From Amoebophrya sp. A120 (taxonomy: Eukaryota > Protista > Dinoflagellata), in the NCBI GenBank assembly GCA_905178155.1, contig CAJINV010000006.1, positions 3,782,130 to 3,846,129 on the forward strand: a stretch of 64,000 bases of DNA. Direction: 5' to 3'. The position numbers and the translations under genes are program-made. Under the pieces are notes generated by a model, which worked only from the letters and a program-made list of their open reading frames with translations, had not been told where the DNA came from and did no database searches. Within the stretch, counting starts at the first letter, position 1. Each line of letters opens with the position of its first letter. Shown in pieces: positions 30,201 to 64,000 of this stretch.

Positions 30201-33200
30201 CTAGTGCCAAAGTTGCGTAGATGTCATGTTGATCCTCACCTCCTCGTGTGCTGGGAAAGTGCTTCTCCTGCTGCTGTCCTCCCCGTAGTTCTTGTTGCGG
30301 TTGATTTTCCTTTTGCTGCTCGTACTCACCCCCGGGTGGGCGGGAGGCACCTCGAGCAGCTCGTACTTGAAGTAGCAAATCGTACGACTATAAAAAGAGG
30401 ACCTTAATAGCGGACTGGTATCTGAAAAATCTTCATTTGCCGTTGTTCGTGTTGTCCCTGAGGTTGTTCCTGTTGTAGATGATGATGAAGTTGTTAAAGA
30501 TGAAGTAGAGGTTCCTAATATGTTGCCCTCTGTTCCATTCGTTTTGCTGCTCTGATCGCTGCCAGCCGCAACAGGACGAGGACCGAGAGCACCATCACGT
30601 GGGGGCTGACTATGAATATCTTCTGCCACAGGACCCCGAGGACTCGCGGGGTTGTCCTTGTCCTTATCCGCGCCGTGGTACTGGGCGAGATCATGATGGT
30701 CATCTTCATTTTCGGGGGTTGGTCGCGGTTGTAGTAGTACATCACCACTTCTGCCACTTCCACTACGAGGCGGCCGCTGTTCTGTAGTAGAAGGAGTGGC
30801 TGTCTTAGTACTCCCTCTGTACACACTGACGGCAACGACATGCCTGGGCTTGATCAGTCCCGCGTAAGCGACTATTTCCACCCCGTCCGTGTCGAGTACC
30901 AATTCCTGGGTTTTCTGGTCGACGTGACAGGGAATGTCGCCTTCCACGTCGGCCCGGGGGAAAGCGCCGTGAGAGCACTTTTTCGGGGTTGTTGTACTAG
31001 CATGATCCTCAACAACTTCTTGCTCGTTTTCGTGTCCCACATCCAGCTGCGTCTTCGGCTCACAGGACACTGTCTGTGCAAAGATCTCGTTGAACTCTTG
31101 TCCTGGAGCTTTTACCTTCTTCGCTCGAATGCCCTCGTCCTCGTCCCCCTGCTGGTGCGCGGCGCCGCTTATAATTTCGTCCTGCTCCCGCATCAAATTA
31201 TCTTCCAACAACTGCTCAGTTGCGGAGGTCTTCGTCGTTTTATTCCCCGTTGTTCGTCGTGGTTCATCTTTATTTTCCCCTTCTCCGACCACGGTAACTT
31301 GCCACGCGACCGGGTTAAACACCAGCTCGTAGGTTTCCGGCAGAGACGCGCCTAAGTCGTTATCCCTGTCCTGCAGGTTCCGTTCCTCCGTGGACAGCGT
31401 GCCCAGGCACTCCGCGGGGGTCGTGTGACTCCGCTTTGCCCTTCTTGCCCTGGTGGTCGTGGAGGAGGTTCTCTTGCTTTCATTTCTGATTCTGTGGCGG
31501 AATCTACTTTTCCTCTTGTTCATCTTCTCTAGAAGTTGTATTCGCTCGTGTCGTTCTTTTCCCGCCGTGGTCGTCGTCCTAGCTCGACGACGACGACCAC
31601 GTGCACGCTCCTGCTGCTTTTCTGCTCGTCGTGTGTTCATTATTTCGAGCAGCGATGGAATATTACTGCTCGCATGATCCACATCCTCGTGCGAGCCGTT
31701 CATCTCCTCGACGACATGTTCATTTTGATTTTCCAACGATGGAGATGGTGGCAGTGGCACCTCCACCTCCTGCGCGGACGCGGAGCCGGAGTCCTCTTGC
31801 TCTTCCTCCTCGTCCATATGTTGATCCTGAGCCACAACTTGTTGGCTCGCTTGCAACACTTGCACCGACGGTTGCCGAATGTCCGTGTTCACGCCGTTAT
31901 GCACTGCAAAAGTATCGCACTAGTATGAACCAGCCATGCTCCGGCTGCCGCCGGAGCGCAAGGCTGTTGGGCCGGGGCAAGACTGTTTGCCGATCGGCCC
32001 ACAACCCAACGGGCCTATGTACAACGAAACATACTGCATTCGTGCCGCCGGTTTGCGCCAAGGCCAACCCGCAGGACCACTTGCGCGCTTCCCGCGCCTG
32101 CGGGCGCTCTGCGCAGGGAGCAGCTGCAAAGAACACCGGGGGCGAACAGAAGGCGCTCGGCGGGAGAGGGTAGCGCGAGAGGGTGGCGCGAGAGGGTGCG
32201 CGAGAGGGTGGCGCGAGAGGGTGGCGCGAAAGGGTGCGCGAGAGGGTGCGCGAGAGGGTGGCGCGAGAGGGTGCGCGAGAGGGTGGCGGGGACAGGCGCC
32301 GAACAAAACAAGTCCGCGAATGGCCTGCAGTGCCAAATATGGGTAGTGCCATGCGGATTCGCGCCCGCCACTTTGTGTTTTTACCCTCTCGCAGACCTCT
32401 CGCAGACCCTCTTTTTTACCTCTTTTGGGGGTCCCCGCTAATAGTCCGGCTATACTCGCGGGTAGAGGTCGACAGAGGTGGCCGAGAGGTGGCCAAGAGG
32501 GTCCGCGAGAGGTCGCCCCTTATTCGCGCCACCTCTCTCGACCTCTGTCGACCTCTCGCGCCCCCTCTTTTTGACCTCTCTGCACCCTCTGAGGCACTTA
32601 GGCGCCGCCTTAAGGTGGGGCCTTCGGCGGGCTATACTCGCGCGCCCTCTCGCCGACCCTCTCGAAAGGGGTCCCGCGCCACCTCTCCACCTCTGTCGAC
32701 CTCTTTTTTACCTCTTTTGACCTCTTTTTGACCTCTCGGCCACCTCTTGCTTACCCTCTGTCTACCTCTTTTTTCGCATGAATATAATATATAGTAATCG
32801 CATGACATCGGAGTTCTAAGGGCAGTCCGTCCCCGTTGGCATCAGGCCCTACTAAAACCAATAAAAAGAAAGACATATAAGGAATAAAGCACTAGGAGGC
32901 TTGCGCAGAACCAAAAACTTACTGAAAGAGAGGTAAGCATAGCTGTAAGGGACTACAAGGGGAGGCTTACGGGGAATAACGGGGAAGGTCAACGAACGAC
33001 GTTCAACGTAGAGCGGACGAAGGCATACAAACTAAACCGGTTCACAAGTATTAAAGCGTTTTACGAAAGTACGAGGCGCGGCAGCCTAAGCAGGGCGGAG
33101 GAAGACGCTACAGCCACACGGGGTCCGTACTACCACCATACAGGTATGTCCGACCAAGGACACATGGAAAGGCCTGAAGGTAGATAGCAGGTGCTCACAT

Positions 33201-36200
33201 GGGGGGGCCCTGGTCACGCAGGGTAAAGCCCGAGGGTGCTAGCTCACCAATACCCGCGGATCCCCCCATCGCAGTCCTCAGAAAAAATACGCCCGAGACG
33301 CGATAAAGAAAAACAGACCCTATCCCTACAAAAGGTAGGCATAGAGTCTCCACCTGGCGGAGGTGTAAGCTATATAAAATCAACCTAAGACGATACGAAG
33401 AAAACTTTTCGAGAGCCACAGCTATCGTTCACACACGAAGACGTACCGATTTCGGCTTATTGTTTCTTTTTTCATTTTTTCACGACTTACAATTTTGACG
33501 TAGGACTTTTATACGAACGCACCGATATTTACGATCTACCGAGATTATCAACGTACGAGTTACTTTAACATGGGCTACTGCCGTACGGAAACACGAACTA
33601 CACGTATTCAAACTTAGACTTGTAAAACTTTGAACGAAACGTCACGAGGTTCCTGGATGTGTTTTGTGTTAGTTCAATGCATGTTACCTCTCATGCATCG
33701 AAGGACCATATACATCGTGGCGCGAACAAAATACTCTACTAATACATTTGTTTGTTTTTTCCTTTTTTCCTTTCTAACATAATTTTCCAAGACCTTAATA
33801 TACACATGCGAGATTCATTAACCGGAGCATTTGTCAAGAAGAAAGACCCATGTTGAGGCCAACGAAAAGAATGACACGTTCATTTTGCAGAAATTTATTT
33901 AGAAGAAATTATTTTGAATGGAAAAGGAAAAAACAAAAAAATGGAAGTCGTATGTGGTCGGTCCGTTGAATCGTCGGCGCAGGGTCGTTGGTGCTGGGAT
34001 CCTGCCGTTAGGTCAACTTGGGCGAAGGTGTTGTAAAATTGCTCGTGCTAAATATTCATTGTTGTCGTACTTCTGTTTGTACTGCAAAGGCTGTTTTGTT
34101 CTTCGAAGTTGTTAATCGTTTCTTCGGTCGGGTCGGAAGTTGTTGTAGCGATGGTTCTGATAGAGGAAAGTCACCGTAGCTGCGTCGTTTTGGCTAGGGC
34201 ACGTTCGTGATGCTCGGCATTACAGCTTTCCTGCTGCCATGAGGGACAGTTCGGAGGGTGTTGGCGACGGCGAAAACCTGTTGCGCCTGAACTCCGCTGC
34301 CTCGTCCTGCACCGCCCCTCTCGTGGCCCGGTCTGCATGGTCTGCAGCTACTTGCATTCGGTTGTGCCGCAGGATGTTGTTCGCATCCAGATTGTCGTTG
34401 AACTCCAAGAATTGCTGGTAGTCCCTTGAGATGTTAACTTGCAAGGTAGCCCGCAGCGGAGAACCTACCTCGTGCAGCCTCGATCTGTCGTCATTATCCG
34501 TCTCGAAGGTGCTCAGCTGTCGCGGGCTAGGATCCGGGAAGTGTCGGATGTAGGGGAGGGACCCATGCATGTCAAGCTCCATTTGTTCGATTTGGAAGAT
34601 CGAGGGGCTCAGGACTAACTGTTGCCCCGGGGACATCAAAAACGGGCTGAGCGGTTCAGGTTCCGGCTCCGCCTGCTGCAAGACCGCATCGGCCTGGTAT
34701 TGTTGCAAGTATGCAAAATACCTACACGGGCTATGACCGAAGGGCGGAGAAGGCGGGAAGTCGAGGAGCTCGATGTTCTGGTCCGGGAACTGCCGCAGCT
34801 GCTGCTCTGCATCCTGATTTTCGATGTGTTGGTTCAGGATGTTCTGCGCATTGTCGTCCCATACGAACGGGTTGCTGGGGATCATAGGGACGTGGTAATT
34901 GTAGACCGGGACCGGGAAGTCTGCGTCCATATTTAATCGCACACAAATGTTTTCCCCGAACGATCTGACGCTTGCCGGTGGAGAATCTTGCATCGACTGA
35001 AAACCCGAATGCGGCAGGCTAGCCGGGGGATCGGACATTGGCACCGGGGTGACCAATACCTGGTTACTGTTTTGCTCCAGCATTCTCCGGCACTCCTGCA
35101 AATCAAAAGCGAAGATTGACCCGTTGTTGTGCGCCAACATTTTAGCTCGCAGACCCGTCCTAGCGTTTGTATGAAGCTAATAGTGGGGCTGGAGAGGCGA
35201 GTAGTTCCCGTTCAATTCGGACTATTGACCACTCCGCTCGATCGATTAATTTGTCAGGAGTCGTAGGCAGGAACGGGTTGTAAGCGGGAACCGCTGCGGA
35301 GGGGGAGATCTGCGTGGTAGAATACTCCGCTCCAGAGTCTGCTTTTAGGTTAGAACCGCTGCTGCCTCTACTAGTGCCACTGCACGTCAGCTGAATAGAA
35401 TCCGGCGCAAGTCCCCTGTTGAAAGCACGAAACCAGGCTCGCTCCCTCCGTAATTCTTCTTTGCGTTTTTTAACCGCTGGAGGAGTGGCAAACAAGTGGT
35501 TTCCGTAAAATCGCTGCTCCGAGAACCAACCGTGTTTGGTCTCGTGGGAGTGGAACGGAAGCGGGATATCGAAGACCTGTGCTGTGCCGAACGAAATCCT
35601 CCCGGGAAGCTGTTCAGGATCCCGAAGCGTGCGTAGAAGAGCTGGGTCGGGGCCAAGTTCCGCTAGAAGCGGCGCAGGTCTGCAGAACCGATGAGGACGC
35701 GGTGATTGCCACGGGACGTACTCGTCCGACACTCCAGACGCCCGGGATGGAGATGGCACCGTATAAAAATTACTACCCGGTAGGTTTGACCGTAGGAAGT
35801 ATCTTTCTTCTGCTACTGACCAGTCCAAGTTTCTAATGCCTAAAATAACGCTTTCTTCATGAGGGTAAGACATAATCTAGGGCCCCAGTACTCTTTGGAG
35901 GCTATGAAAAAACTTTTTACTTGGACACTTCTATTACTGTTTATGTGTACGTTGTTAAGGTAGAAAGGGATGAGCATGCTCACAAGTCAAAAATATCGAA
36001 CCAATCGGAGAGAAGTAGCAGGAAACTGCGAGTCGACACTCTGCTAATACTCTCTTTATCTTACATTTTTACGACCCACCGAGCGATTAGACCCCGAGAC
36101 GTGCACGAAGCTATAAAGTAAGCGACCGTCATACCGTTATTATATCGAGAGTACTGCGCAGCAACGAAAAACGAACAAGACCCTCCTGCAACGAATCGCT

Positions 36201-39200
36201 TTGTCGCTACAGTTGGGCTAGTCGTACCGGTGTAGATTATTTGAATGCGACATGAAAAAATGTGTACAAGTACCAAAAAAGTTGTACAAAAGGAAACCAA
36301 TTATATGTTTGCATGTAGAGTTAATTTAGCAAAACAAGCAGTGAAGGAGCTTTAAGTGTGACTTTATTTCAGTATATTAGTTTAGTTTTGTTTAATCTCT
36401 AAATGTATTGCATGCTAGAATTAAAAAAGGATGTATGTGACGAAGAGACTAGTATTCCAAGAACAAAAAAAAGTAACAGAAAGAACGAAGATAGAGCTTA
36501 CATTGACTGCTGGTCTTAAGGAAGAAGGACGTCGTGACTTGCTTGCTTTCGCTTAGCTTAGAGCCAACAAAGAGATTCATGAAAACGATGTAACGGACGG
36601 ATTACAAGGAGCTTCTCGTGGTGTCTTTCTGGTCTTTTTTGATTTTTTTGAACCCACCAAACCTTCTGTGGTGGTGCACCTACTCCCAAATCCTTTTTCC
36701 GTGTACTAGCTTCAACCAAAGAAAGTGCTTTTTACATGTCATTTTCTTTACTATTTCTAACGAGTTTCGTCTTGCGGGGTACCAGCAAGGAGGGCTACAA
36801 ATCAACTGTGGAAGTTTGACAAGACTTGAAACTGTGAACCAATCAAGAACTAATCAAGAACTTTAGCGAACTCCGACTTTACTGTTAAAAACTTGTTAAA
36901 AACCAACTGGACTTGCAAGTTAGTTTCGAGTCTTTTTAAACTTTTCTTTTAACCCCCCTCACAACTTTCAGCTGCAGCGCTTGTCCGGTCGTCTTGTACG
37001 ACTTACCGCCCTACCTGCCCAGTCTCGTCCGAGGAGAAACAGGCGTCACCACCCGGGGGAAGTTGTGTTTTAATTCCCCGGTCGCAACTGTACCCAAGTT
37101 GGGTCTAAAATCGCCCGGATTTCGGCCTGCATCTGCTTCATCCAATCACCCATAGTGGAGACCATTTTGTCGGAGGTGAACCACTTGGGGGCCTCGTGGC
37201 GGGCCACAACGAGCTTGCACGCTTTTGCCGGGAACGTGTGGCGAAAGGTGCCGCTCAGCGTGAATCTAACTAGAAGCTCGACAATATCCCGTAGGAAGTG
37301 AACAACTAAATAGTTACGCTTATACGCCCGGATGACCGCGCTACAAAACGCCGATTGGTGCGTTTCCGGGTGCACCGCGCTGGCCGCCGCCGAAAACTTC
37401 GACAAATAAAATGGAAAAGTACGTGTTTTGTCGTACAAACAGTACAGCAATCTCCTCGGAATTGTGGCGTCGAGGAAAAAGTCCAAAAAGGTCGTAGTCG
37501 TGGTGCCGAGTGTTTCCGGCTTACACGCTAGCGCCCTGGGATAAATCAGGTGCAACGGCAGCCGAATGGGCGACAATAAATCGTCGAGGTAGCGAAGGAT
37601 TTGCAAGAACCTGTATTGCTGCCCAGCCGGTGAAGACACGAACAAGTACTCACTCCAGGACAGCCCTCCATCTGCCATCCTAGGAGCGGGGGTAATACCC
37701 ATAGGCATACCCCGCACTTGCAAAAATAGCAAATCGGCAATGCCGATATAACAGCTCGCGCAACACCAGCGTACCAGTGCGTCGATATCCGCAAGCGACC
37801 AGGATGAAGAAGAAGACGGGGCTTCCCGGGACAAGAACGCAAATTCTTTTTCGGGCCCTTTGCGATTCCTATCATAGGCGAGGACAACAGACTGGAAACC
37901 ACCAGCCTGGAAGACGCAGCTATTCAGCATGTGGAGGTTGTGGCAAAGAAAGGAATGTGCAAGACCGGTGTACAATCGTTCAAAATCATAACCGTCAAAT
38001 TCTGCGAAACCACCCGCCGTTACCCGGGCGAGCGCCTCTTCCGAACTCTCCACGCTCCACGCCCCGGGCCACACGCGGCTCTTGAATTCTGCCATAGTGG
38101 CCGACAGAATCAAGTGCAGGACCTTGCCGGGGGCATGAAGGACCGTTTTGTCTGTGGCCGCGGCGATGAACCTCATTTTGTAGGCCGGATACTTGTGCCC
38201 CTTGATCACAGCGTAATACGCCGGATGCGCCGAGGCTTGGCGTTGCTTTACCTTCGCCAGCAGGGCCGGCGCGAACGAGCCCAGCTGCTCGACGATCTCA
38301 TCGATCTTCTCCGCCGAGGTAGCTTTGTACACTTCATGGAGTGACTGCTGTGCCGGCGGGAATTCGGAACCTAAAAAAGAAGTACTACGCCGTGCTTGCC
38401 ATACTGGTAGCAACGGCCGAACTTTTTCCCCTCTCTGGTCTACCCCTTGCTGTACCCAGTACTGCTGAGAATTTAGGTTGGGAATTTGACTGGCCAGTAG
38501 CGCTCGGTCAAAATCCTGCTTCGGAGGCCTCTCCGGGCTGCTTGGTATTGAATCCGACAAAGACGGCGTTGAGGACGAAGATGAGCTAGACGTGGAAGAG
38601 TCCGGAGAGTTACTGGCACTTGAGGAGCTACTGGCACTTGAGGAGGGGGATCGGGGCGGAGGTCGTAGTCTGGAAATGCTACCGGCATGCGGGGTCCCAT
38701 GACCAGGTGGCATAGCATGCTGACCTTCTAACCACACCGTCGACGTCTGCGGATGTGCCGGCGCACTGACCGGCACTACGCTGCTGGCCGGAATACTGCT
38801 TCTAGGCACTAGCACCTCGAAGCTGTCGATCAATGCTGCTTCTGGAATCACATCGGGGTCGTTGATCTCGTCTGTTACTACTCCTGCCGCCACGTCCAAG
38901 AGGTTGACTGGTGGATCTTGATGTGGAACTGATTTGGTTAAATCTTCAAGCAGGTTGACCGCCGTGTTGAAAAAAGGACCTGGCTGTAGATGCCTGCTAG
39001 TACTAGCCGCGCTACTAGCGAGTGCTTCTGAATCGGTAGGTTTCGCCAAACAGTCGTTGCCCACGGTGGCGTCGCCGTCCAGCCATAACTCGAAGGCCGA
39101 GAGTGGATCCATATCCAACAGCAGCTCGTTTCTACTGGCATCAGCTCCTGTGGCGGGACACTGCGGGCGCATTCCCATCTGCAAAAGTTCAGCAGTTTCG

Positions 39201-42200
39201 TGGCGACTAGTCCAAGGGTCCAACAGGGTCACCGGGAGCGGACTGGCCTTGAGCTTGCTGGAGAACGAGCCCAAATTGACCGCTTCAGCGGTCCATTGGA
39301 GAAGATTTCTTTTCGTTTCTTCACGAAAAAGTACTTGAACGGAAGCATTCGACAGCACGAAGATCGGCGATAACCACTGTAGTTGGTGTAGACCGGCACG
39401 GATTTGTAAGATGGGTGCCCGTGACAAGATCAAGGTCGACGTGTACATCTTTTGGTGGTTGAATGCAATGATGGTCCCCGTCTGCGACACCGGGTGCAAG
39501 GCTTGCTTGGTCACCGATGTTGTGATCCCGGCCTGGAGGTCAAAAGTTGCTAACTGTTCCAAACCTACCTGCGCCGCGCGGTGCATGTCCAAGGCGCATC
39601 CAACGCCTTTAACGCCTTTGAGCAGGCTACGGGAGACAAGTCTCCATCCTGCTTTGGCGTTTAATTTCCACAACAACGATTGCCGCCGCCCTGACAATGC
39701 TGAGGGAAAAGGGCGGACATGAACCGTATTGATAGCTGCAGCCACGGGCGCCGATGACTTCGGAATGTTTTGTTTGAGTTCGGCTTGGACGGCTTTGCGG
39801 TCTGCTTCAGCCTGTTCAAGTTGCTTCTGGAGGGCGGAGCTACTGCTATCCTTTTTGAGCTTTTCCTGCGCCAGTTCGATCGCGGCATCGATTTCGGCGT
39901 GGAGCTTTATTTTTGCTTGGAGGAGGACATGCGGCTGGTCCGTGGAGTCGATCTTACCGAGTTGCAGTAGCTTGTCGCTCTTCGTCAACACAAACTGCAA
40001 CAAGTTTTTGACTCCGTGTAACTCCAGTTTTGTTTCTTCAATCAAGTCCCGTTCCAGTACCTCGAGCTGGTCTGCTGTAGTTGCTGGAAGTCCAAACTTG
40101 TTACGCGTCAGGTATAGACCTCTGTTCGCACGTTTCTCGAGACTTTGCTGCGGAGTATCTACTACTGAAGAGCCACCAACAAGCGGCGCATCGATCATGA
40201 TCTTTGCCACCGTGTCCGGGTGTCGTGGAGCCCCGGTATGAGCAAGTGCTAGTTTGTTTGTGTCACTGGATACCATCAGTCCGGTATTACTCCGTGGGTC
40301 AGCAACCGTTGGGGCCGCGGTCCTCGACGGGGTAGCATTCGCAAATACTAGTTTTGCTCGCTGGCTACTGGGAACGGGGGGAAGATGTGGGCTCAGCGAT
40401 CTCGTATCTGGAAGAGAAATACGGGTAGGAGAGGGAAGTCGCACTGCCGGGCTAATCATCCTGGGAGGGGATCCAGAAGTTCGTGGAAGCACCGCCTCAG
40501 GGGGGCTGGACGAGTTAGTAGCAGCCGGCACGGCGGTGGACGTCGGACGAGGAGGTGAAAAGTCGGCTCGATGGTAGTCGTCGCTGGTGCATGTTGGAAA
40601 AGATCCGCGTCCGGCCATGCCCAGGTCTTCCATCAGGAGCGCTGTGTACAAACTTTTACACATTAGCCAGGTAGTCGATGTGGCCTTGTCGTAGTACCCA
40701 AAGACGAACAGCTGTTGTAAATTTCGTACAATGTCGAAAGCCGTTGAAAACTTGCCCCATTCGTATGTGTTGGTAGCGGATCGGTCATACACCCGGCCGT
40801 TCGCATCAGGAACAGGAATCGGAGCCGCCGAGCCGTCAGCCGTGTTCCAATCCACCTCGTTGAACTGCTCCTCGTTTTCGGGTACGGCATTACACCAGAA
40901 AAAATGGCGCACATCCTGAATCAGTTCCTGGTCTTCGATGTTGACCCGCTCGAGCAACTTCGTAGCCGAAAATTTCTGCTCAACACGAAATTTTGGTCGC
41001 ATCAGCAGCGAAACTTTCGAAGCGACCACTGAATCAAACGCCGGACCGCACAACACTTGGAGGTTGTCTGCCGTAGCTGGCATAGCGATATGTCCTCCCC
41101 ATGTGCACCCGTCGGGGAGGTAGCGGCGATAGTCAGCACACGCGCACTTGAGATCGCTGCAGGCCTTTGGTAAAGATTTGACCCGTAGGTTGAAGGTCGT
41201 GAGGCATACGGGCGGGCCGTATGTAAAGGCCAAAAACCTATCGTTTAGCAAGTGGCGGAAGGTGGAGCGTAGGTTGAGTTTGTCCACAGTTTTATGGTGG
41301 TAGAAGAATATGACTGCCTTCTTCCCATCCCGAGACTGCTTGTCGCCGGCCAACTTTGTCATGCGCAACCTACTTTCGACCAGTTCTTGCAGGAGAAACA
41401 GTTGTTGCGGTGGAAGGACGAAAGCGGTAGTGAGGTGAATGCGGAGCGCGCGAAGTAGTTGTTTACTGCAGCCAGCGATGATTTTTAACAACCAGGAAAC
41501 GCAGTTGAATTTTGCTGCCCCGATGTGCCAGGACGGTACTGGAAGCCATCTGCCAGAAGCTGCAAAATCCTGTGGCGGGTCTAACGCAAAGAACAGCCAA
41601 ACTATCGCGAGCAGAATCCGTTTGACCTCCGCATTGTTTTTCGGGAGTTTGGTGGTATACGCAGTGTCGGGGTGCAGAGTAGACTTGTCTGGTTGAATCG
41701 GAGCATGCAGGTCCAGGCTGAGCCGATTGTTGCTGGAGGTTTCGACAGGAGTGAAGATCATTTGTTTTGCCACCCTCTTATCCTCGCTATTACGCACCGT
41801 GCTAAACTTCCGACGAAACAGCTCTTGTACCATACTACTTCTGCGAGATGGAGTAACGACCGGGTCCGGTGGTAGTAGTGGTGTTTTGGCCGCATCCGGA
41901 AGTTCGATGAGACGGGGGGCATCCGACTGGCGGCAGTTGCGTAGTTGATTTACTCGGCTAGGACCTGCTACACTCCGCCGTTTGAGGCAGGGTTCATCGG
42001 ACACCAGTCGTCGAGATTTCCGCTTCGCAACAAAAAACTCAACGGAGGAGATGAGCTTTGGCGGGGGGACGGCCGGTGGTGGAGCCATGTCCTCTACGTC
42101 CTGCGTGCATTGGACACCAACCCGCGGTGCGAAAAGCTCCTTGTTAGTGGAGTCTTCCACTTCTTGTGTACACTGCACCCCCAGCTGAGAAACATGTGTC

Positions 42201-45200
42201 TTGCCGGGTGTCACCGGGCCATCATCTTCAGGCGGACACGCGGAGCAATTCGCCTCAGACTGGTCAGAGGGAAGGAAGTTGTAGTTGCCCGCCTGTGTTC
42301 AGGTTTCTTTGTAGCCTCTGCAATTTCAAAACTCCACCTTGTTCCGCTAGAAGACGATACATGCTGGAGCCGTCTTCAGGATGTGGACGCCGACGCGGGG
42401 CAGCAGGATGCGTCACGTCCTTGAACTCCAAATTGAAACCCCACGGGTAGTACGTGCGGAGTGACACAATCCAAAACGACTCCCACGCATCAATTTGTGA
42501 TAGCGTGGAGCCGTCGGGAAGCGTAGCTGTTCTGTTGGCCTCCACTTTGTTCATGTAAAAAAGAACATCTGTCGTCACCGCATGGTTCAAGTACTGCTGC
42601 TGGTGCAGGTACATCGGGTGCGTCTCATCCTCGTGCCCCAACCGCTCCGCACAGTTTGCGTGCCCATGGAAGCGTGTACCAGCACCCGCACCCGTGTGGG
42701 CTTTACCCACGTAAGCCAGTCCACAGCTGCACCGGCGCAAGTATATGAGGCTGGTGTCGCCCGCCTCGTAACATGAACGCTGTTCGCGAGCCCGTACTTC
42801 TAGCAGTTTGCCGTTCACTTGTAAAAAGCGGTCAGGCGAGGCGGAAGAACAGAGGCTGCACGGGTTGCCCTTGGCCGCCCTACAACAACTGATCATGCGC
42901 GATCTGTCTAGCTGGAAGAGCTCGGGCTTGAGTCTATCCGCTTTCCAGTTGTTGAGGTCGAGGACGTGGGCCTTAAAAGACGCAAACTTCATTTGCAATG
43001 GGATCGAATAATCGGCCATCCAGGCCACCGGCAGCTCCTCATGTTTGAAGTCCGACTTTATCGCGAAAATATCGTTTGTGTAAATCTGTTGGACATCGCA
43101 GAATTCGGCCACGGCAACGAGCGAGTTGTTGACGGCATGGAGGAAGTTTTCAAGGGGAGGGTTAGGAGCTACAGGTCGAGATGGTTTGCGTACCAGTTGC
43201 AGCACCGACGACGAAGATTGCGCTTGAGGTTGCTGGGCGGGAGTCCGACAGGTGTCGCACAACAGAGAAATCGTAGAATTTAAGTTCTGATTGTACAGCA
43301 AGGGCGGGTTTTCGGATGCAGTCATTTTGTCACTAGAAGCCACACTATAAAGTGTAATCGGAACTACACTTTCGATTGAGCTGTAAACCAGCTAGAGTCA
43401 AGACATTTTAGGATAAATTTGGCCGTCTTCCAATACGAAGCCCGCATCCTCCCAGAAGTGGATCTCCTGGTTAGCTCGGTCCACCGAATCTTCGTACCTC
43501 CACTGATTACTGAAAAAATCGTAGTGCCAGCGGAGGGCTCCCCAACTGCTAGTCCAGTAATCTTTGCCGGTACTCCAACTACAACGGTCCTCCTGGGAAA
43601 CTGTTGAAAGAAATCGGAACGGCTGTTGATGTAATGGAGGTTTGGAAGGTTCTGCTGGCGGCTGATTAGGTGTAGATAGAGAGAAGTGCTGGCCGAGGTG
43701 GGTTTTGTTTTTTCTTCTGGGGCTGCCGTCCGCGTGCAAGGGGGTGTACGACGTACGAAGGCCGTTGTCAGCAAGTGATGCTCGTAATCCTTGAAGCTTA
43801 GTGCCGTCGTGCCCGGAAGAAGCCCTGGAAAATGTCGCCACTGGTCGATGCGGTTGGTCAGCTAGTCCAGTATCTGGGGTGGTCTGTCGTCGAGGTACCA
43901 CAGGCGATGGGGATGGCGTTCCGCGAATTTGTATAGTCGTATGATGTGTCTCCTGTCGGATCATATTCGTAGTAGCGGATATCATCTTCGAAAAAACGAT
44001 GGTGGTTGATAAAATTCCACTACTGGAAACGGCTTGCCGCGCGGTGTAGACGTAAAAGCAGCAGGACGAAACGTTGCGTCGAATATCCCCTGACGACCCG
44101 GGAATGCAATAAACCCCTTTTAATAATGTCGTACTTTGTTCGCTTGGTCCAACTAGGCGATTATTCGTAAATAATTTACACGGTTAATTTACACGGTTAG
44201 TTTCAAACTTTGACGAATCCAACTACGCAGAAACAACCCACGGACACGGAACCGAGATTGACAAATTGCCCATTTTATGTTTCAGCTTTGGACGAAGTGC
44301 TACGTTACGACTACGAAGGTCACACAACGACTCCTGGAAGTTTGGGATGAAAATGGTTAGAGTCGCTTAGTTACTGCCACCACAGCAATAGCGAGCTCTA
44401 CATGACATCGGAGTTCTAAGGGCAGTCCGTCCCCGTTGGCATCAGGCCCTACTAAAACCAATAAAAAGAATCATCATCATCATCATACCCTCGCGATTCA
44501 GTGCACTTCTGATGGTGCACGAGAGAAAAGCAAGTCGCACCAACGCACTTCTGATGGTGCGTGCAGGCGCTGCGCATTATGCTCCAATGAGCAACAGCTC
44601 ATGTTTTCCATCTTTATACTCTCCGCCGGTGGGAAGCAGCCACCAAGAGTCGATGCAAAGTGAAAGACTTACGCACCGCAAAACTATGTACGGCGCGAAT
44701 CGCCGAGCACCCCGCAGCCGGGACACTGTCTAGAGCTACGCTATCCCCGAGCGGGCGAGGCATACAGTGTGCGTTTAGCGGATCAGTGCCTTGGGTCAGG
44801 TGATACTAGACCTAAGGGGAAGCGGCCCCAAAAGCCATGAAGTTCATTGAATGCGTACACTGTCATCATCCGCCGCAGACGACACACCGCCCCCGGTTAC
44901 GTAAATCAATAAAGTTAAGCTATTACGCCCTTAGTCCCTCGATGTCATGCAAAGACGAACCCCAGCGGAAAAAGGCGGAAGAAGAAAGAAGAGGANACAA
45001 CGTTGCACCGCGCGACATGGAAATCCTCTATTTATACCAGGCTGTGGCATATTTCAACAAGAACGCCGGTAGTAGTCGTGTCAAGCTACAAAGCCTGCGA
45101 TTTTCTTTTTGCATGAGACTCACTACACGACTCCAAATCTAAAAACGACCTCCAACAAATCCCCTTAAAAATCTATACCGCTGCCCTCCTGACTTGCAAC

Positions 45201-48200
45201 TTGAGCCAGCTTCCCTCCTTTGCGTCCGCGATTTCCTGCCGCAGTTCCGTTGCGTCACAGTCAACCCGTCCGTTGACGCCGATAAGGCGCATGTAGGGCT
45301 CCAAAACCAAATCATACCTCCCCATTTGCTGGACGAGGCGTTTTATCAAATGCAAAAATGTCTGGGTCTGGAAGCTTGCGAGACTTGTCATGCTTGTCTG
45401 GCATGACCAAAAAGCTTGCGATGCGTGTCCAAGAAGAGACCCTTTTGCCTGTCATGCAAAAACGCAGTTTCTTCTGCGGAAAACGCAACACAAAGAAGCG
45501 CAGCTATTTCTCATGCTTGGCTGTGAATTACAGAGCATTCACTATTCCCAACGCAGCATTACATCGGAAGTCTACGGGCTGTTCGTCCCTACCGGCATCA
45601 GGCCTTACTTAAAACCAATAAAAAATTCGTAATTATCCCGCCGCGATTCAATGCACTTCTGATGGCGCATGCAGAAAAGCAGGGCGCGCCAACAAAAATA
45701 AAGGAAACGTAAGGAAGAGCTTAGAACGAGACGTTGTTACGAAATCACGGTACGGCGCGAACGATACGACTAACTAAGAAAGCCAGCGGCAACGGGACGA
45801 CTACAGCCACACGGGGTCCCGCGAGGACCGAGAACAGGCTTACCGGACCTGCGGTAAATAAAAGGCCTGGAGGTCTTCGTGGGTGCTCACATAAAACAAG
45901 TTTCGGTCCACACGCAGCGCACCGTGGGTGCATGCTCACCACTGCGTGAAAACTTGTTCTATCGCCGTGCCACGCCGCTTGGCAGCGCGAAAAAAGAGAA
46001 AATCGTCCCTACTCAGACCTCAATTGGAAAGTGTAGGGACGTAGCCAGCAACGGCTAGAAAAACCTAGGAGGGCCAACGCAGCATTACAAGTTTCCAGGC
46101 CCAGACATTTTTACATTTGATACGTTTGTTGATCACCTGCGTGACGCCGTAGACCTTGCCGATTTTCAATTCCGAACGCAGCCCCGAGTGCTCCTGCATC
46201 TGCAGCCCCAGCCCGATGTCGCCGGACACCTTCTTCGTGTAGAAGCTGAAGTAGCGCGAAAATTTCTGCACCTGCACCATGATGTCGTCCCCCGTGCGGA
46301 GCTCCTCTTTCATAGCTTCCACGTCGTCCTTGACGCCGTTGACAGCAACGATGCGATCCCCCACGATCACCTTCTTGTTGGCGTCCGTTTGCGCCTCGTT
46401 GTAATTGTGCAAGAGTCCGCCCCAAACGACGGATTTGACCACCAGGTGCGCCGGTGCGTCGACCGCGAGTCCCCTGTTGGCTTCTGTGAAGGCCTGACCG
46501 CCGTCGAAAAACGAGATCCCGAATTTCGTGAAAGAAAGACATATAAGGAATAAAGCACTAGGAGGCTTGCGCAGAACCAAAAACTTACTGAAAGAGAGGT
46601 AAGCATAGCTGTAAGGGACTACAAGGGGAGGCTTACGGGGAATAACGGGGAAGGTCAACGAACGACGTTCAACGTAGAGCGGACGAAGGCATACAAACTA
46701 AACCGGTTCACAAGTATTAAAGCGTTTTACGAAAGTACGAGGCGCGGCAGCCTAAGCAGGGCGGAGGAAGACGCTACAGCCACACGGGGTCCGTACTACC
46801 ACCATACAGGTATGTCCGACCAAGGACACATGGAAAGGCCTGAAGGTAGATAGCAGGTGCTCACATGGGGGGGCCCTGGTCACGCAGGGTAAAGCCCGAG
46901 GGTGCTAGCTCACCAATACCCGCGGATCCCCCCATCGCAGTCCTCAGAAAAAATACGCCCGAGACGCGATAAAGAAAAACAGACCCTATCCCTACAAAAG
47001 GTAGGCATAGAGTCTCCACCTGGCGGAGGTGTAAGCTATATAAAATCAACCTAAGACGATACGAAGAAAACTTTTCGAGAGCCACAGCTATCGTTCACAC
47101 ACGAAGACGTACCGATTTCGGCTTATTGTTTCTTTTTTCATTTTTTCACGACTTACAATTTTGACGTAGGACTTTTACGAACGCACCGATATTTACGATC
47201 TACCGAGATTATCAACGTACGAGTTACTTTAACATGGGCTACTGCCGTACGGAAACACGAACTACACGTATTCAAACTTAGACTTGTAAAACTTTGAACG
47301 AAACGTCACGAGGTTTTTTTTTTTAGTAATCGCATGACAAATTTCTCAGCGTGAGAAACGAAATCTGTAATGCGGATGTGACTTGGCAGAAAAATTTGCA
47401 AGGCATAGATGCGATCAGTACGAGTACGATGCTTTTACAGTGCGTATCCGTGTTTGACAAACCCAAGCTCCCCGTACTTCTCCTTGAGCCCGGTGCAGTA
47501 ACTTGCCATCTCCAGCCCATTTTGGTTGAACCGGCGGCAAAAGGAGGGAAGGGCATCGGTCGTGGTCCGGCCCTGCAGAAGAACCCACTTGCAGTATCCT
47601 GAGTAAAAACGTCCCCACCCCGTACTTGTCATGCAAATTTGCAAGAATTACAGAAAGACAAAGATTTGTAATGCGCATCTCCATGAGAAACATTTCCAGT
47701 CGCGTTTTGGAATTTGTAATGCTGTAAACAGGATAAGCTGATGGATTTGTCATGCGGTTGTCCTTGCTAACATGCACTACACTACGGACTGCAACTTCTC
47801 ATGCGTGGCTCCCAAAACTTGTGGATTTGTCTTGCTAGGTTCCCAACTTGACTATGGGGTGGGGACGTTTTTACATATGATATGCAGCACATGATCCGCT
47901 CGTTAGAAACGCCCACGGCGTAGGTGTTCGTTTCCATGAACGATTTCGGTAAGACATAAAACGCCTGGTTCGCGCACGCCGGCTCGCAGGTTCCGATTTC
48001 CTCAGCCGTCACTCCGTCTACTTCCAGAGCGGCCACAAGCTCCTTCCTGGTGGCCTCACAGGTGGTGTACGTCATGCAATTTGGGTTTTTCGAGTCGTCC
48101 CGCACGTACAAACCCCCACGGGCGGCAACGTCGGACTCGTAAAAATACTCGTCCCCGAGGTTGAGCTATGCAATGCAAACGCATCGCATACTCGTAGAAT

Positions 48201-51958: not shown

Positions 51959-54900
51959 TTACGCGATCGCGTTCAAGCAATTCGCAATTTCCTTCTCGAT
52001 TTCGGCGATTTCGATCTTGCGTTTTTCGATCTCCTCGTTGTTTTTGTCCTTGATTTCCTGTGGTGTTTTTTCGTCGTAGTTCGGCACCTGGGTCTTTTTC
52101 ATGGCCTGGTCGTACCTTTGCTGTTTTTCCTTCAATTTCTTGTCCAACTTTTGCGAGTGCTGCTTCAGATCGACCATATCCTTGACGTCGAGCGAAATTT
52201 GCACCTGGAGGTTCACCAAAGAAGCCAGCGTGCCCTTCGGCGCGGCGTCCACATTGGTGGCGGAGGAAACCTGGTGATTATTGTTGTGGGTTTTCGTTTT
52301 TTAGCGTTGCGACTGATTGCCATAGTTGCGCACTACAGATGATGCTAGCAAAAGCGTGCCACTGTTGCTGCCCCTAGTGATTGATTGGCGTGCGGCTGAT
52401 GCATCTGACACCGTCGCAGCTTCTTCTGTCTATCAGTTCCGCTTCTACCTCCCGGGTCAAGAAGATGAACTGAACATATCACATTCCGTTTCGCATTTAT
52501 TTTTTTCCGGAAGTTCTTCATTTTTCCAGATAGACGTATTAGGATGAAAAAGTCGTAAGTCTATCGCGTAGTCTCTATACCTTGCCGAGCGTTTTCACGA
52601 CAAACAACGCCTCCTCGTCGAACGGCTTCTCCTTCGTGTTTGACACCACGTATGCAATCGGCTGTTTCTGCGGAATGAGAAGCGCGGCCTTGCTTGACCG
52701 ATATGCTGTGCAAAAGTATCGTACTCGTATAAATGCATTACAAATTTTCTCAGCATGAGAAATAAAATTTGTAATGCTGATTTATCTCAAGAAAAAGATT
52801 TGTAATGCATGATTGCAATACGAGTACGATGCTTTTGCACAGGATAACCGGACCTCTGATACAACGTCCATGCACTCTTTCATCTGTGCCTCAGCTATGA
52901 CAGCCTCAGGTTGGAAATCCTCAAAGTGGAAATGATTTGTAATGCAAAAACACGAAGCCAGTTGAAGCACCATTTCTAGTCGGCGCATGACAAATTTATT
53001 CCCGGTCACTCAAACCGTGTCTGTCATGCGTGTTAGGCACAGGGGTGCGTTTCTTTCATGCTAAGTAACAGCACTCCAATTCTGAACCCGTAGAAGGACA
53101 ACAGTCAGCCCCCACATTGCGTTCTCTGCAATACAGTCTTTTTGATGTCGCATTTCATGCATCACAAATTATTTCCACTTTGAGACTTTCCATTCTGAGG
53201 CTTTCATATCAGCCGCTTCGTTCTGCCAAGACTTCGTGCCCAGGGGGTAGCTGTCGTTTGTCATGTGGTTTCGCATGACAAATTCTCGAATGTTGTCATG
53301 TGGTTTCATGAACGAGAGTTTTCGATTTCATATTTCTCAAGCATATTGATCTGTGGATGAAGGTGTAACAGATCATGATAACTGCAGCATGATTTAGCTG
53401 TGCTGATACGTGGTCGAACCACATTCATACTTAGCCACGACCACAAATCTTTCATGTGCGACCATCTTCAAGTAGTAGTCCAAATTTTTATACCTTGCCA
53501 CCACAATCGACTCGTATTTATTCGGGTTGCTCGGTAGTCTCTGGTAAAGCTCCTCTGTTACGAACGGCGGTGTATGCATTGCAAAAGGATCATGTTGAAG
53601 CCATACTCGTAGTACCGAAGTGATCCTCCGAATCATGCAAAAGTCGCTTTTCTAACACTAACACTAACATCACTAACACTAACACGAGTCTACATCAGAA
53701 TGACAAATTTCGTTTGAATTTGTCATGCTCCTGCACTGCAAATTTTAATTATAATTTGTAAATGCGAATAATAAAATCACTTCCACTTCTATCACTACGT
53801 ACCGGACACACGACAGTACTTTTGCAATCGATACAGCATCGGGTGCAGCAACCGAAGCCCTTGGTCCAGACAGGTGTAGAGCACGTCCCGGGCGATGTTT
53901 TTATCCTCCTCTTTCGAGTCCTGCCCGTAAAGACGCGGCTTCAGTAACTCCAGGTATACGTCACACAATTCCTTCAGCCAGAAATCGTATATGGTGGATA
54001 CCCCCTCGGAGAATATGGAATGCAAACGTGTCTGGGTCTGGAAGAATGCAAGACTTGTCATGCAAATTTTACATGGGCCTAGCATCACAGACTTCTGAAG
54101 GGCTTCCTCATGCCTATTCCGCATGAGAAACACCGTCTCCATATAGCACGAAGTAAACTCCCTTTGCTGGTCATGAAATACAGATGTTTTTAGAATGCAG
54201 AGACAGCATCACAAGTTGCATTCTTCCAGACCCAGATTATGTATTTGCATTTGATAGAGAACTCGTATTTCTTAAAGCTCTGGTCCATCTTCACACAGGC
54301 GTGGTTGAGGCGGGACAGAATCCATTTGTCCTCCAATTTCAGCTTGTGCTTGGGATTCAAGAAGCCGGGGTACTTGTGCATTTCCGTGCCTTCCTCGTTC
54401 AGCTTTAGGTTTTGCAAGGCAAACTTGGTCGCGTTCCAGAGCTTGTTGCAAAATTGTCGGTACCCAACCACGCGCTGGATATCCAAGTTCACGTTTCGGC
54501 CCTGTGCGGTGTAGGCAAGGAGGCCGAGTCTCAACGCGTCGGCGCCGCACGAAGGAATGCTATGGAAGCGTCAGGATTGAAATTGTCAAAGTTGAAATAG
54601 TTCTTTGTGATGCATAAAATGCAACCCACAGAGTGCCTGTCTTGCAGAGTACGCAAGGGAGGCAGATTGTAAGCCTGTTGAGGGGTAAAAATAGAGCTGC
54701 TACAATAGCATGACAAAAGGCGTCTTCCTTAGTACCCAAACAGCATTACAAACTGGATTTAATAGACACCACCAGGATTTGTCATGCGCCACTTGAAAAT
54801 AACTAGGCGCCTACTGGTATCCGTCTTATGCGTCGCAAATTATTTCAACTCTGACGATTTCGATCCTGACACTCCCATAGATGCCCTCCGGAAAGTCTTT

Positions 54901-61855: not shown

Positions 61856-64000
61856 TCAACGCACTTCCATCCTGCTTCCCGACCTTCTGAAGCTACCGCC
61901 AGACCCGGCCGTTGTGCTGCCTCCGTTTATCATCGACAAACCGACGTCCTCTTCCGCGTTGGGTGCTATGACAGTGCACAACTACTTTCCCTCCCCCTCA
62001 TTTGTAAAGCACGAACGGCAATACAAGCATCAACAAGAGTGCCGGTTTTGCATGACAAATTTGCATCACATGAGTGTCTCCTTAGGCTACCACAACTTGC
62101 CATGTAAGCGCTACCAAGAAACAAAGGGTGGATTGGGTATTTTGCATGACAAATGAGGGAATGGAGGGGAGTTATGCATTGTCATAGATGCTTCCGCAGA
62201 GTCACTCTCCCGCAACACCAACTCGTCCTTTATCAGCTCCTTTTTCCCCTCATTTTCCTCGTCCTCGTTATCGATCGCACTCATGCCCCGGCTGCTCGCG
62301 ACGAAATAGGTCACCCTCCTTTGCAGCCTTTCCCGCATATCACACAGAAAAAAAAGCTGCTAACACGTCATGGTCAACTACATGTGATGCAAAAATGAAT
62401 ACCAATACGTATCTATAATAGTATTGCCACGTATCCTTCATCTACACAGCACGCGTATAGGCTCGGCTATGGCGGATCATTTTTGATTTTTGCATCACAG
62501 ATTTTTGATATGGTGTGCTTCGCTTTTTTCATCTGTGGGATACCGCATGGAACGGCAGGTGACGCCCGGTTTTTTCTTCATGAAGTATCGTTCCTTAAAT
62601 TCCAGCGCGTTCTCCGTTTGAAACCCGGTCTATGCATCACAAAAGCATCGTGGCTGAAGTAGTGTGCAAAATTTCGCATCACATCGGAGGTCTAAGGGCA
62701 GTCCGTCCCTGTGCCTTTTCTAGGCCTACTAAAACCAATAAATCGCGACTACGTAGTGTAAACTTCTACTGAAAAGCTAAATTGGAAAACTTAGTAAGGC
62801 TACTTCTACGTAAGCGCTTGTAAATAAGTACGCGATCAAAAAAGGTTTTGGCATCGCATAATTGTTGCCACCACAACAAGTGCGAATACCGCATCACATC
62901 GGAGGTCTACGGGCAGTTCGTCCCTTTGCCATTCAGAGGCCTACTAAAGCCAGTATATGCTAAGCTACCTCGTAACGTAAACTTCTACGGGAAAACTAAA
63001 TCGGAAAAAACTTAGCATTGCTACTTAAGCGCTTGTTTTGTTGAAAAGGGAATAGTCATGCGAGGTATATCCGTTTTTTAGTGATGGGATTTATATTAAA
63101 TCCTTGTCGTGCTGCTATAGCAGGAACTACTTGCACGATACTTTTGCAGCGGATACGTTTGGATCTTTGTCAATCTCTTCACTGTATTTCGACGTCGATC
63201 CTATCAAATGCAAAAGTGTCTGCGTCTGGAAGGTTGGAACTTGTGATGCCAACTTTGGACTCTAAAAAAATCTGTATTGCATGACCCGCAAGAGGAGTCT
63301 AGTTCTTTGTGCTACGCGGGGAGGGCGTCTGTCATGCGGAGTAGGCATGATCAGTAAGCCCTCTAGAAAATCTGTGCCGCTAGGTCGTGCATTACAGACA
63401 TCCTGGGTCATGCAAAACATGCATGACAACTCTCAGAATCTTCCAGACCCAGACATTTTTGCATTTGATAGATCCGGGCAACAGCCCAAACGTCCGGTGC
63501 ATTGCGACTACAATGAGTTCCATCTCCGGCTTCGTAAACACGAGCTGGCAGGGAATTTGCCCCACGTCGTCGTCCTGTAGATCCACTTGATCCTTCAACA
63601 CGTCAAAAAAGTTGACGTCAAAAGTCGGCCGCCAGAAGTGCGTGTAATCGTGGATGAACCTGGTTTTCGTTTTTTATGTTTGTTATTCGTTAGGAAGTTG
63701 TCCTATGAATGCGCTTTCGCATCACAGAATGATATCCGGATTCATCACCAGCCTGTCATGCACAGCAGCGAGAAGAAGTGGAACATTTGCTTCGTACTGT
63801 TTCATCCATGATCATAGAAGGAAGTACTTAGTAGTACCCCATGCTGCTCTTAAAAGCCAGCTTCTGCTTTGCATTCCGCTGCATTCGGACATAGAGTCTC
63901 TCCACTAACTCTGCCGTCAAAAACGCGTCCCGCACTTCAGCCGGCATCTTGTACTCTGCGACGAAGTGCTCGCGCTCGTTGAGGCGCCGCCCGGATACTG
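61856..64000 (-). CDS. Hypothetical multi-exon protein, 3' part
   Basis: Open exons lie between introners 63202-63470, 62631-63155 and 61967-62186 (e.g. FDVLKDQVDLQDDDVGQIPCQLVF). Confidence 0.5.
62684..63040 (-). mobile_element. Two tandem short relatives of the PLE terminus (about 140-215 bp) inside introner 62631-63155
   Basis: tcggaggtcta.gggcagt.cgtccc at 62684 and 62899, each immediately after gcatcaca. Confidence 0.7.
63202..63470. mobile_element. Introner family B (TIR TATCAAATGYAAAWATGTCTGGGTCTGGAA), representative copy
   Basis: TSD gatcc. Other copies: 1035-1361, 4427-4699 (ctggg), 7818-8178 (gagct), 11749-12039 (tctgc), 16261-16541, 18328-18624, 20912-21195, 21471-21732 (ggttg), 21918-22176, 24482-24723 (gcagt), 25844-26114, 27268-27529, 28140-28391, 45344-46122, 48920-49181, 54014-54256, 56915-57176, 57804-58059, 58163-58425. 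Confidence 0.9.

Follow-up and report, generated by a model that had tools for sequence, protein, structure and literature searches.

A 64,000-nucleotide stretch of the 115.5 Mb genome of Amoebophrya sp. A120 (G000:C6:3782130-3846129), referred to throughout as the window, contains a retroelement copy that spans 14.5 kb between its target-site duplications (TSDs) and includes two open reading frames (ORFs), one for a GIY-YIG endonuclease (ORF1) and one for a reverse transcriptase (RT; ORF2). The copy lies in an introner, an intron whose own ends, consisting in Amoebophrya of a terminal inverted repeat (TIR) and short direct repeats, define what is spliced (PMC7789003), and it is joined to an 8-bp motif of that introner, here termed the box. 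It is likely that the family is a Penelope-like element (PLE) of the N-terminal-endonuclease (Naiad/Chlamys) type, integrating beside the box through target-primed reverse transcription (TPRT) with pairing of its RNA to the target. Three autonomous units, each of 11-13 kb, were found in the A120 genome together with several short non-autonomous subfamilies; all autonomous and short units have in common a 3' module of ~60 nt and a 5' module of ~40 nt.

Termini beginning with TCGG were located at 32808 (after GCATGACA), at 45564 (after GCATTACA) and at 62684 and 62899 (both after GCATCACA), with an internal TCGG copy at 44408 after ACATGACA. The sequence TCGGAGTTCTAAGGGCAGTCCGTCCC is present at 32808 and 44408 and in variant form at 45564, 62684 and 62899, each directly 3' of [G/A]CAT[G/T/C]ACA. 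The terminal 26-mer yielded four matches in the window and none in 100 shuffles. Exact 16-bp duplications ending in the box were found at 32792/47324 (tagtaatcgcatgaca) and 45548/46074 (ccaacgcagcattaca). The first-pass annotation, made from the window alone, had described these termini and both duplications, and its coordinates were correct in every case. Of the four termini, 32808, 45564 and 62684 are joined to a target box, whereas the box at 62899 is supplied by the adjacent 215-bp unit, of which it forms the 5' end (..gccaccacaacaagtgcgaataccgcatcaca), and the join is an internal tandem junction. Both 62899 and 44408, the latter an internal junction of a tandem pair, were rejected as target junctions. 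The insertion at 45564 took place on contig C4 and not in the window, since the copy and its introner sit within a retrocopy derived from C4.

Searching the genome with a 19-nt core (TCTANGGGCWGTYCGTCCC), taken without the first 7 nt of the element and without flank, gave 42 matches against none in a reversed control, and CAT[C/G/T]ACA (CATBACA) lay exactly 7 nt upstream of the core in 36 of the 42. Five matches are internal tandem junctions and one is a duplicate (45564 of C4:6613368), leaving 36 independent target junctions, among which the sequence beyond the box is unrelated. At least 14 insertions possess a 16-bp TSD, exact or with one mismatch, of which the last 8 nt are the box (L002, L003, L009, L010, L011, L013, L014, L027, L030, L045, two pairs in the window and the full-length copies on C18 and C20); this count is a lower bound, as long insertions without a TSD inside the 3-kb loci fall outside it. 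The TSD-flanked insertions measured 24, 26, 56, 140, 184, 198, 295, 421, 510, 917 and 1408 bp, in addition to three full-length insertions of up to 14.5 kb. Several introner positions were hit by different subfamilies independently of each other (L027/L030; L009/L048; and, at one family-B position, the 32808 insertion of the window (W32808) with L024, L045 and L051).

Site-specific insertion beside the box, proposed from a handful of termini, is therefore borne out genome-wide by the tabulation of flanks and TSD lengths, in which the flanks are not random at the junction. The box plainly belongs to the target and not to the element, as had been suggested, because it is present in both TSD copies and at the homologous position of uninterrupted paralogous family-B introners. 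The precise end corresponds to the 3' end of the RT-sense RNA and the opposite end lies at differing points, with insertions of 24 bp up to full length, again in agreement with the earlier description. A fixed 3' junction, variable 5' truncation and a constant stagger together indicate that integration proceeds by TPRT.

The box is abundant in the introners. Counting both strands, the window contains 194 occurrences of GCATNACA where 9 would be expected, a ~20-fold excess, and the middle base is G in 91, C in 56, T in 46 and A in one. In the ~150-bp family-B introner the box occupies a conserved subterminal position of the left arm, with its reverse complement twice in the right arm, and five boxes were counted by eye in the family-A introner copy at 63200-63470. 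Boxes in the window are effectively GCAT[C/G/T]ACA, mostly followed by A/G, A/G, T, T, and the introner motif is therefore longer than 8 nt. When compared with the masked window and the other loci, at least 31 of the 36 target flanks were introner-type dispersed repeats, which upholds the claim that the sites lie inside introners; the five short or unusual flanks had no match in the masked window or the other loci. The repeats were shown in two ways to be real introns, three being precisely absent from the retrocopy and such repeats being skipped by an RNA contig. Nearly all insertions fall in introns because the box is a repeated subterminal introner motif, and the targeting may be adaptive or may be a side effect of how abundant the box is. 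Tandem GCGAGAGGGTG-type repeats and an inverted, CCTCTCGC-rich counterpart (32159-32288 and 32350-32760) lie directly to the left of the degenerate left arm of the introner hosting the 14.5-kb copy and resemble a further palindromic insertion into that intron.

The endonuclease is N-terminal to the RT, ORF1 (43343-42264) being upstream of ORF2 (42214-37070) on the minus strand, and in the C20 copy the end of the endonuclease and the RT share a single open frame of 1863 aa. Alignment of ORF1 with homologues identified the catalytic positions LIY, YVG, R, H, E and N, with a Cys cluster upstream, and aa 146-310 matched the Pfam-annotated GIY-YIG regions of RT homologues with E values down to 4e-10; a Pfam search with ORF1 itself gave no significant match. 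ORF2 contains the RT core motifs YKMRFIAAA, GYDFERLY, VRGMPMG and RYLDDLL, a CxC (zf-CDGSH-like) motif, KCACADY...GGH (aa 356), that aligns with C.C...GH of homologues, and a DK motif, YYDKATS (aa 507), that aligns with DKA.N. A search with the C-terminal 496 aa gave 413 homologues (E ≤ 1e-3), among which the best that are full-length combine an N-terminal GIY-YIG with a C-terminal RT, and the nearest RT relatives are from Amoebophrya AT5.2 (38% identity) and Amoebophrya A25 (30%). Homologues, catalytic residues and the CxC and DK motifs thus agree with the initial identification of a PLE in which GIY-YIG precedes the RT. Between the DK motif and RT motif 1, ORF2 carries a low-complexity, Ser/Pro-rich, coiled-coil-like insert of ~830 aa (aa ~514-1344; 38183-40675, minus strand), compared with a spacing of less than ~100 aa in homologues.

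An AlphaFold model of the RT (predicted local distance difference test score, pLDDT, 84) had TERT chains as its top Foldseek matches, followed by group II intron RTs, and sequence and model together indicate that the RT belongs to the PLE/telomerase-like lineage. Motifs A (aa 1408) and B (aa 1500) are separated by ~85 aa, where the model shows extra helices and strands that may represent an insertion-in-fingers domain (IFD), a trait of the Naiad/Chlamys clade. Cysteines and histidines were found at Naiad-aligned positions of the endonuclease (CSC inside GIY..YVG, H..H after it and CC-x7-C-xx-C upstream) with different spacing, and the pattern looks Naiad-like by alignment. Pfam gave no match for eight ORFs of the element, with ORF2 remaining negative at E = 10 as well, searching PDB sequences with the RT returned noise only, and an Rfam E-value scan of 32000-48000 detected no ribozyme, including no canonical hammerhead. 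Two further full-length copies, on C18 and C20, show 74-84% protein identity to the window copy. Membership among the site-specific retrotransposons without long terminal repeats (non-LTR; R2, Tx1) was ruled out by the GIY-YIG nuclease and by RT relatives of PLE type. The element is not itself an introner, being without inverted termini, and in the case followed in RNA splicing takes place at the borders of the host introner, not at those of the insertion. Four other RT genes with 27-29% identity (E 1e-11 to 1e-24; C2:151812-152933, C2:6584447-6585484, C1:10111708-10112349 and C11:1608832-1609692; L034-L037) probably represent, from their sequences, other PLE-like families of the genome.

The middle base of the box differed between subfamilies. 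Elements with TCGGAGTTCTAA heads were found at G boxes in six of seven cases and the other 29 elements in none (23 at C and 6 at T), though G boxes are the commonest (Fisher p = 3.6e-6); all three autonomous copies lie at G boxes. At every internal junction the autonomous family has TGTCATG as the 5'-end sequence following CCGA and the short families have TGTGATGC, the junctions reading [A/T]CATGACA and GCATCACA respectively, and the complement UGUN'AUG(C) also follows CCGA in the flank of every inserted copy. A copy on C13 has a T box as its target and C at its own internal junction, a direct instance of the wobble case. In 14 of 14 TSD-verified cases the far TSD copy carried the same middle base, and hence the target itself had it. 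Box choice by the short families is more easily ascribed to RNA than to protein, because the autonomous copies number three and all are at G boxes. The idea that the RNA 3' end anneals to the nicked target, also raised in the first-pass annotation, is strengthened by this subfamily-specific base, and the pattern points to RNA-DNA pairing as the selector of the middle base.

At the target the box-carrying strand, 5'-GCAT[C/G/T]ACA-3', is interrupted immediately 3' of ACA, where the cDNA begins with TCGG, and a second break 16 bp away gives rise to the 16-bp duplication. Under the proposed mechanism the primer ...GCATNACA-3' has to pair, and the RNA would have to continue past ...CCGA with UGUN'AUG(C); the template is thus predicted to be at least 7 nt longer than ...CCGA, reaching into the box in the flank or into the unit that follows in tandem (UGUCAUG or UGUGAUG). 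Pairing of the nicked DNA end with this tail would set the register and pick the middle base, since G in the RNA pairs with C, wobbles with T and does not pair with G, and C in the RNA pairs with G only. C-tailed subfamilies (RNA G) would accordingly be directed to C boxes and, through the G·T wobble, to T boxes, and the autonomous family (RNA C) to G boxes. Among the boxes GCATGACA, GCATCACA, GCATTACA and GCATAACA, the model predicts G boxes for the tail UGUCAUG, C or T boxes for UGUGAUG and T boxes for UGUAAUG. The 5' end of the unit mimics the target, and a finished cDNA could re-prime on a second RNA, which would explain tandems, pseudo-LTRs and chimeras. Bases past the nick (RRTTY) may be read by protein, and insertions would do little harm because the host introner is still spliced.

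RNAalifold analysis of 22 copies of the 3' module yielded three invariant pairs only, with no covariation, and a 3-bp GGC/GCC versus GCC/GGC hairpin in this module was set aside as too weak to claim. A hairpin of the form UUGCUGU-GGUG-GCAGUAA lies ~25 nt from the 5' end of the unit (44355-44390, minus strand) and is kept in the short subfamilies (62855-62885; L023/L024) with compensatory changes (UUGUUGU..GCAACAA, CUUGUUGU..GCAGCAAG); it could be a conserved RNA or promoter element.

Splicing of an interrupted introner was observed at the C4 locus, where a contig of 3171 nt from run X1 (depth 258) lacks four introners, including one of 784 nt that carries a 510-bp element fragment; an unspliced piece at the same locus had a depth of 5.7. 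Since the contig skips it, the introner with the 510-bp fragment is removed precisely by splicing, and the 'spliced-out safe harbour' that had been envisaged has one direct example in RNA. The raw RNA runs X11-X13 contained zero reads of the organism on the tested stretch and hence provided no test of splicing. Host exons beside the 14.5-kb insertion (47435-48594, minus strand) encode repeated GWGRFY...HEIGH segments with an HExxH metalloprotease-like motif.

Each full-length insertion has the layout TSD, full unit (3' module H, 5' TGTCATG), partial unit, TSD (Table 1), and the TGTCATG tandem junction is also present in the C18 and C20 copies. A 26-nt core of H is kept in 42 of 42 genomic copies. 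H together with the adjoining region B forms a pseudo-LTR of ~850 bp that stands at either end of each of the three full-length copies. Three independent copies have a partial unit (H+B) of 831-857 bp; their 5' ends coincide, with a few extra bases that have no match. Because the partial units end at one position, they suggest that the RNA starts ~845 nt before the H end of the upstream unit and reads through the junction, the usual pseudo-LTR logic. In the window copy, the T run at 47316-47323 was probably added without a template where the 5' end joins the target.

The 14.5 kb between the TSDs was rejected as a plain element, ~2.1 kb (2.06 kb) being a second subfamily and a host retrocopy. 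The 586-bp H+X piece belongs to a different, non-autonomous subfamily, and it is followed by a retrocopy of a PDZ-like gene from which three introners are gone exactly at their 3-5-nt direct repeats and in which the fourth, with the 510-bp fragment, is kept. AAAGA is common to both sides of the retrocopy-to-B junction, and a single N, an assembly ambiguity, stands at 44997, 3 nt from the junction of region X with the retrocopy. The simplest reading of the chimera is serial template switching by the RT, including a switch onto partly spliced host pre-mRNA. As the retrocopy, with its excised and retained introners, sits inside the pseudo-LTR, its sequence directly shows that host pre-mRNAs are copied by the element RT. 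The locus at 62684-63036 repeats the full-length layout in miniature, with a complete short unit and, next to it, a truncated one that belongs to a different subfamily; the 215-bp unit has both element ends, the 5' one with a TGTGATGCGG...GUGGUGGCA hairpin and the 3' one with H.

Table 1. Features of the element copies in the window (L053 is G000:C4:6611500-6615500)
Feature	Position	Strand	Remarks
TSD copy 1 (tagtaatcgcatgaca)	32792..32807	+	Identical to 47324-47339; last 8 nt are the GCATGACA box, in left arm of family-B introner
3'-terminal module H	32808..32870	-	RNA sense ...GGGACGGACUGCCCUUAGAACUCCGA-3'; precise end, joined to box
Region B, 3' untranslated part of full unit	32865..33651	-	99.7% identical to 46531-47315
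ORF2, 1714 aa	37070..42214	-	CxC 41129-41149; DK 40676-40696; RT core 37418-38182
ORF1, GIY-YIG endonuclease, 359 aa	42264..43343	-	By homologue alignment; frame differs from ORF2 in window copy
5' end of full unit, RNA sense TGTCATG	44401..44407	-	Reverse complement of target box; internal tandem junction
Start of upstream partial unit, H + region X	44408..44993	-	92% identical over 591 nt to L005; 89-93% to L043, L047
Partly spliced retrocopy of PDZ-like gene from contig C4	44994..46530	-	~1.5 kb; L053 148-260, 525-590, 874-939, 1247-2464, 99.8-100%
Family-A-like introner kept in retrocopy	45344..46127	-	Borders by L053 joint 1330->2115
Nested 5'-truncated copy	45564..46073	-	TSD ccaacgcagcattaca at 45548-45563, 46074-46089
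Region B of upstream partial unit (pseudo-LTR)	46531..47315	-	99.7% identical to copy at 32865-33651
T run	47316..47323		No match in other B copy (33651 onward)
TSD copy 2	47324..47339	+	Pair of 32792-32807
Right-arm remainder of host family-B introner	47340..47436		Matches 52732-52836, 59191-59293
Complete 215-bp non-autonomous unit	62684..62898	-	94% identical to L010; both element ends; joined to GCATCACA box
5'-truncated partial unit, other subfamily	62899..63036	-	99.3% identical to L007; head-to-tail with 215-bp unit

Three other explanations of the junctions were considered. The box could belong to the element and be copied from its RNA, the apparent specificity then being an artefact of misplaced boundaries; the internal tandem junctions, where the element does carry CATSACA at its 5' end, fit such a view. 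However, the box and 8 further unique bases recur as a 16-bp TSD on the other side of at least 14 insertions and uninterrupted paralogous introners possess the box at the same position, which renders this explanation highly improbable. The compact, gene-dense genome (Farhat 2021, PMC7789003) would impose strong selection against exonic insertions, and random insertion might leave harmless intronic copies only; selection, however, can neither account for 36 of 42 junctions falling on the very same nucleotide of an 8-mer nor produce repeated hits at the same position in different introner copies, and the chance that it alone created the pattern is negligible. Targeting by protein alone is a more serious proposal, in which the GIY-YIG endonuclease or Zn-finger-like modules would read GCATBACA and downstream bases and the subfamilies would differ in their base use because they had distinct autonomous partners, some of them lost. 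The bases RRTTY past the nick cannot pair with the RNA tail, and by manual count they follow the box at ~9 of 11 insertion sites compared with ~1/3 of window boxes; a scripted RWTTY pattern (7/11 insertion sites vs 48/193 boxes, p = 0.01) hints at an added protein contact. The Cys clusters beside the nuclease are retained, and such modules are proposed for microsatellite bias in the relevant part of Craig et al. 2021 (PMC8557442). Against this, the 29 short-subfamily insertions are never at G boxes and match their own 5' ends, whereas the autonomous copies are all at G boxes; moreover, C-type elements use T boxes and G-type elements do not, as fits a G·T wobble and is hard to obtain by protein readout. 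Protein-only targeting is thus considered unlikely, and TPRT beside the box with RNA pairing is preferred.

Several observations weigh against the preferred reading. The remaining six of the 42 junctions have variants of the box with one or two bases changed, e.g. CATCAGA, CATGAAA and CATCACG, and the 62684 insertion yielded no TSD. Neither a terminator nor a ribozyme was detected for the end of the element RNA, and folding of the tandem junction (z = -0.13) did not point to structured processing there. By itself the nuclease might recognise the complete box, and the middle-base correlation in these sequences might stem from unseen partner proteins. Current activity is uncertain because each of the three autonomous copies carries at least one frame break, and copy number is low, with ~36 insertion events against perhaps 10^5 boxes. 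The evidence of splicing comes from one locus and one run, X1, whose RNA status is a database guess, for which the spliced contig argues. The retrocopy in the window keeps the interrupted introner, and removal may therefore be slower than normal. The chances appear evenly balanced that target choice is programmed, in the manner of template alignment by telomerase, by 7-8 nt of the element's own RNA, the 3' tail being identical to the element 5' end, which would make this the first RNA-guided endonuclease-positive PLE, adapted to transposon-derived introns.

Many features are shared with the Naiad and Chlamys PLEs as portrayed in the pertinent sections of Craig et al. 2021 (PMC8557442), namely the order GIY-YIG, CxC, DK and RT, pseudo-LTRs from partial tandems, a matching architecture in the nearest protein relatives, frequent 5' truncation, no canonical hammerhead and a biased target choice. 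In the same sections (PMC8557442) their targets are (CA)n, (C)n and (TA)n microsatellites, whereas that of the A120 element is a defined 8-bp box in another transposon family; the A120 element also differs in its clean, constant 16-bp TSD, in its very long ORF with the DK-RT1 insert and in its host, an alveolate (syndinian dinoflagellate), a group not named in that portion of the source. A CCHH pattern inside GIY-YIG and an upstream CX2-5CxxC linker are present in Naiad and absent from Chlamys according to that text (PMC8557442), and the A120 endonuclease has the Naiad-typical Cys/His positions despite its protist host. The Selaginella PLE-X is described there (PMC8557442) as a PLE with comparable single-site precision in a multicopy target, one position of the 28S rDNA, but it is without a recognisable endonuclease and targets a host gene, whereas the A120 element has GIY-YIG and targets a selfish element. 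With the endonuclease-deficient Athena and Coprina PLEs and with telomerase, as outlined in the same source (PMC8557442), the A120 element would share the alignment of the primer by 3' RNA complementary to a DNA end. Those systems use natural chromosome ends, whereas the end used in A120 is internal and presumably made by the nuclease of the element, with a complementarity of 7-8 nt. R2 and other site-specific non-LTR elements employ TPRT at a fixed nick with target changes of fixed length, and downstream target sequence in the RNA aids register. The A120 element is unlike R2, which has a restriction-like endonuclease and an RT of a different clade. Tx1L, which inserts into Tx1D DNA transposons of Xenopus, likewise uses a site inside a DNA transposon family as a 'safe haven' in the passage of Cosby et al. 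2019 devoted to it (PMC6719617); it is a long interspersed nuclear element (LINE) of the apurinic endonuclease (APE) type and so of another element class, and its Tx1D targets are not introns, for which reason no splicing removes its insertions.

How PLEs choose their targets and form tandems is a stated open question in the part of Craig et al. 2021 concerned with it (PMC8557442). A literature search retrieved no paper linking Penelope-like elements to Amoebophrya, or retroelements to introner targets, and A120 introners have been described without mention of this element (Farhat 2021, PMC7789003; Gozashti 2025, PMC12130899). New here are the middle base that tracks the subfamily, the chimeric nature of the 14.5-kb copy and the precise splicing of an introner with a 510-bp fragment. 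Gozashti et al. 2025 (PMC12130899) attributed A120 introners to retrotransposons and reported TIR-flanked elements with RT-like homology; that these mixed signals stem from nested insertions is speculation, and caution is advisable because A120 introner families classed as 'retrotransposon-derived' or chimeric could partly be introners with nested insertions.

The family provides a clean natural data set, with a fixed nick, a constant 16-bp duplication and subfamilies distinguished by a single guide-like base and by their choice of box, and the RNA-pairing model is for that reason directly testable. If the model is true, a one-base change of the tail would redirect insertion to another class of box, and RNA pairing would also drive tandem formation and the capture of cellular RNAs. 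The element adds a third layer to the A120 genome, a retroelement within DNA-transposon-derived introns that are spliced from host mRNAs.

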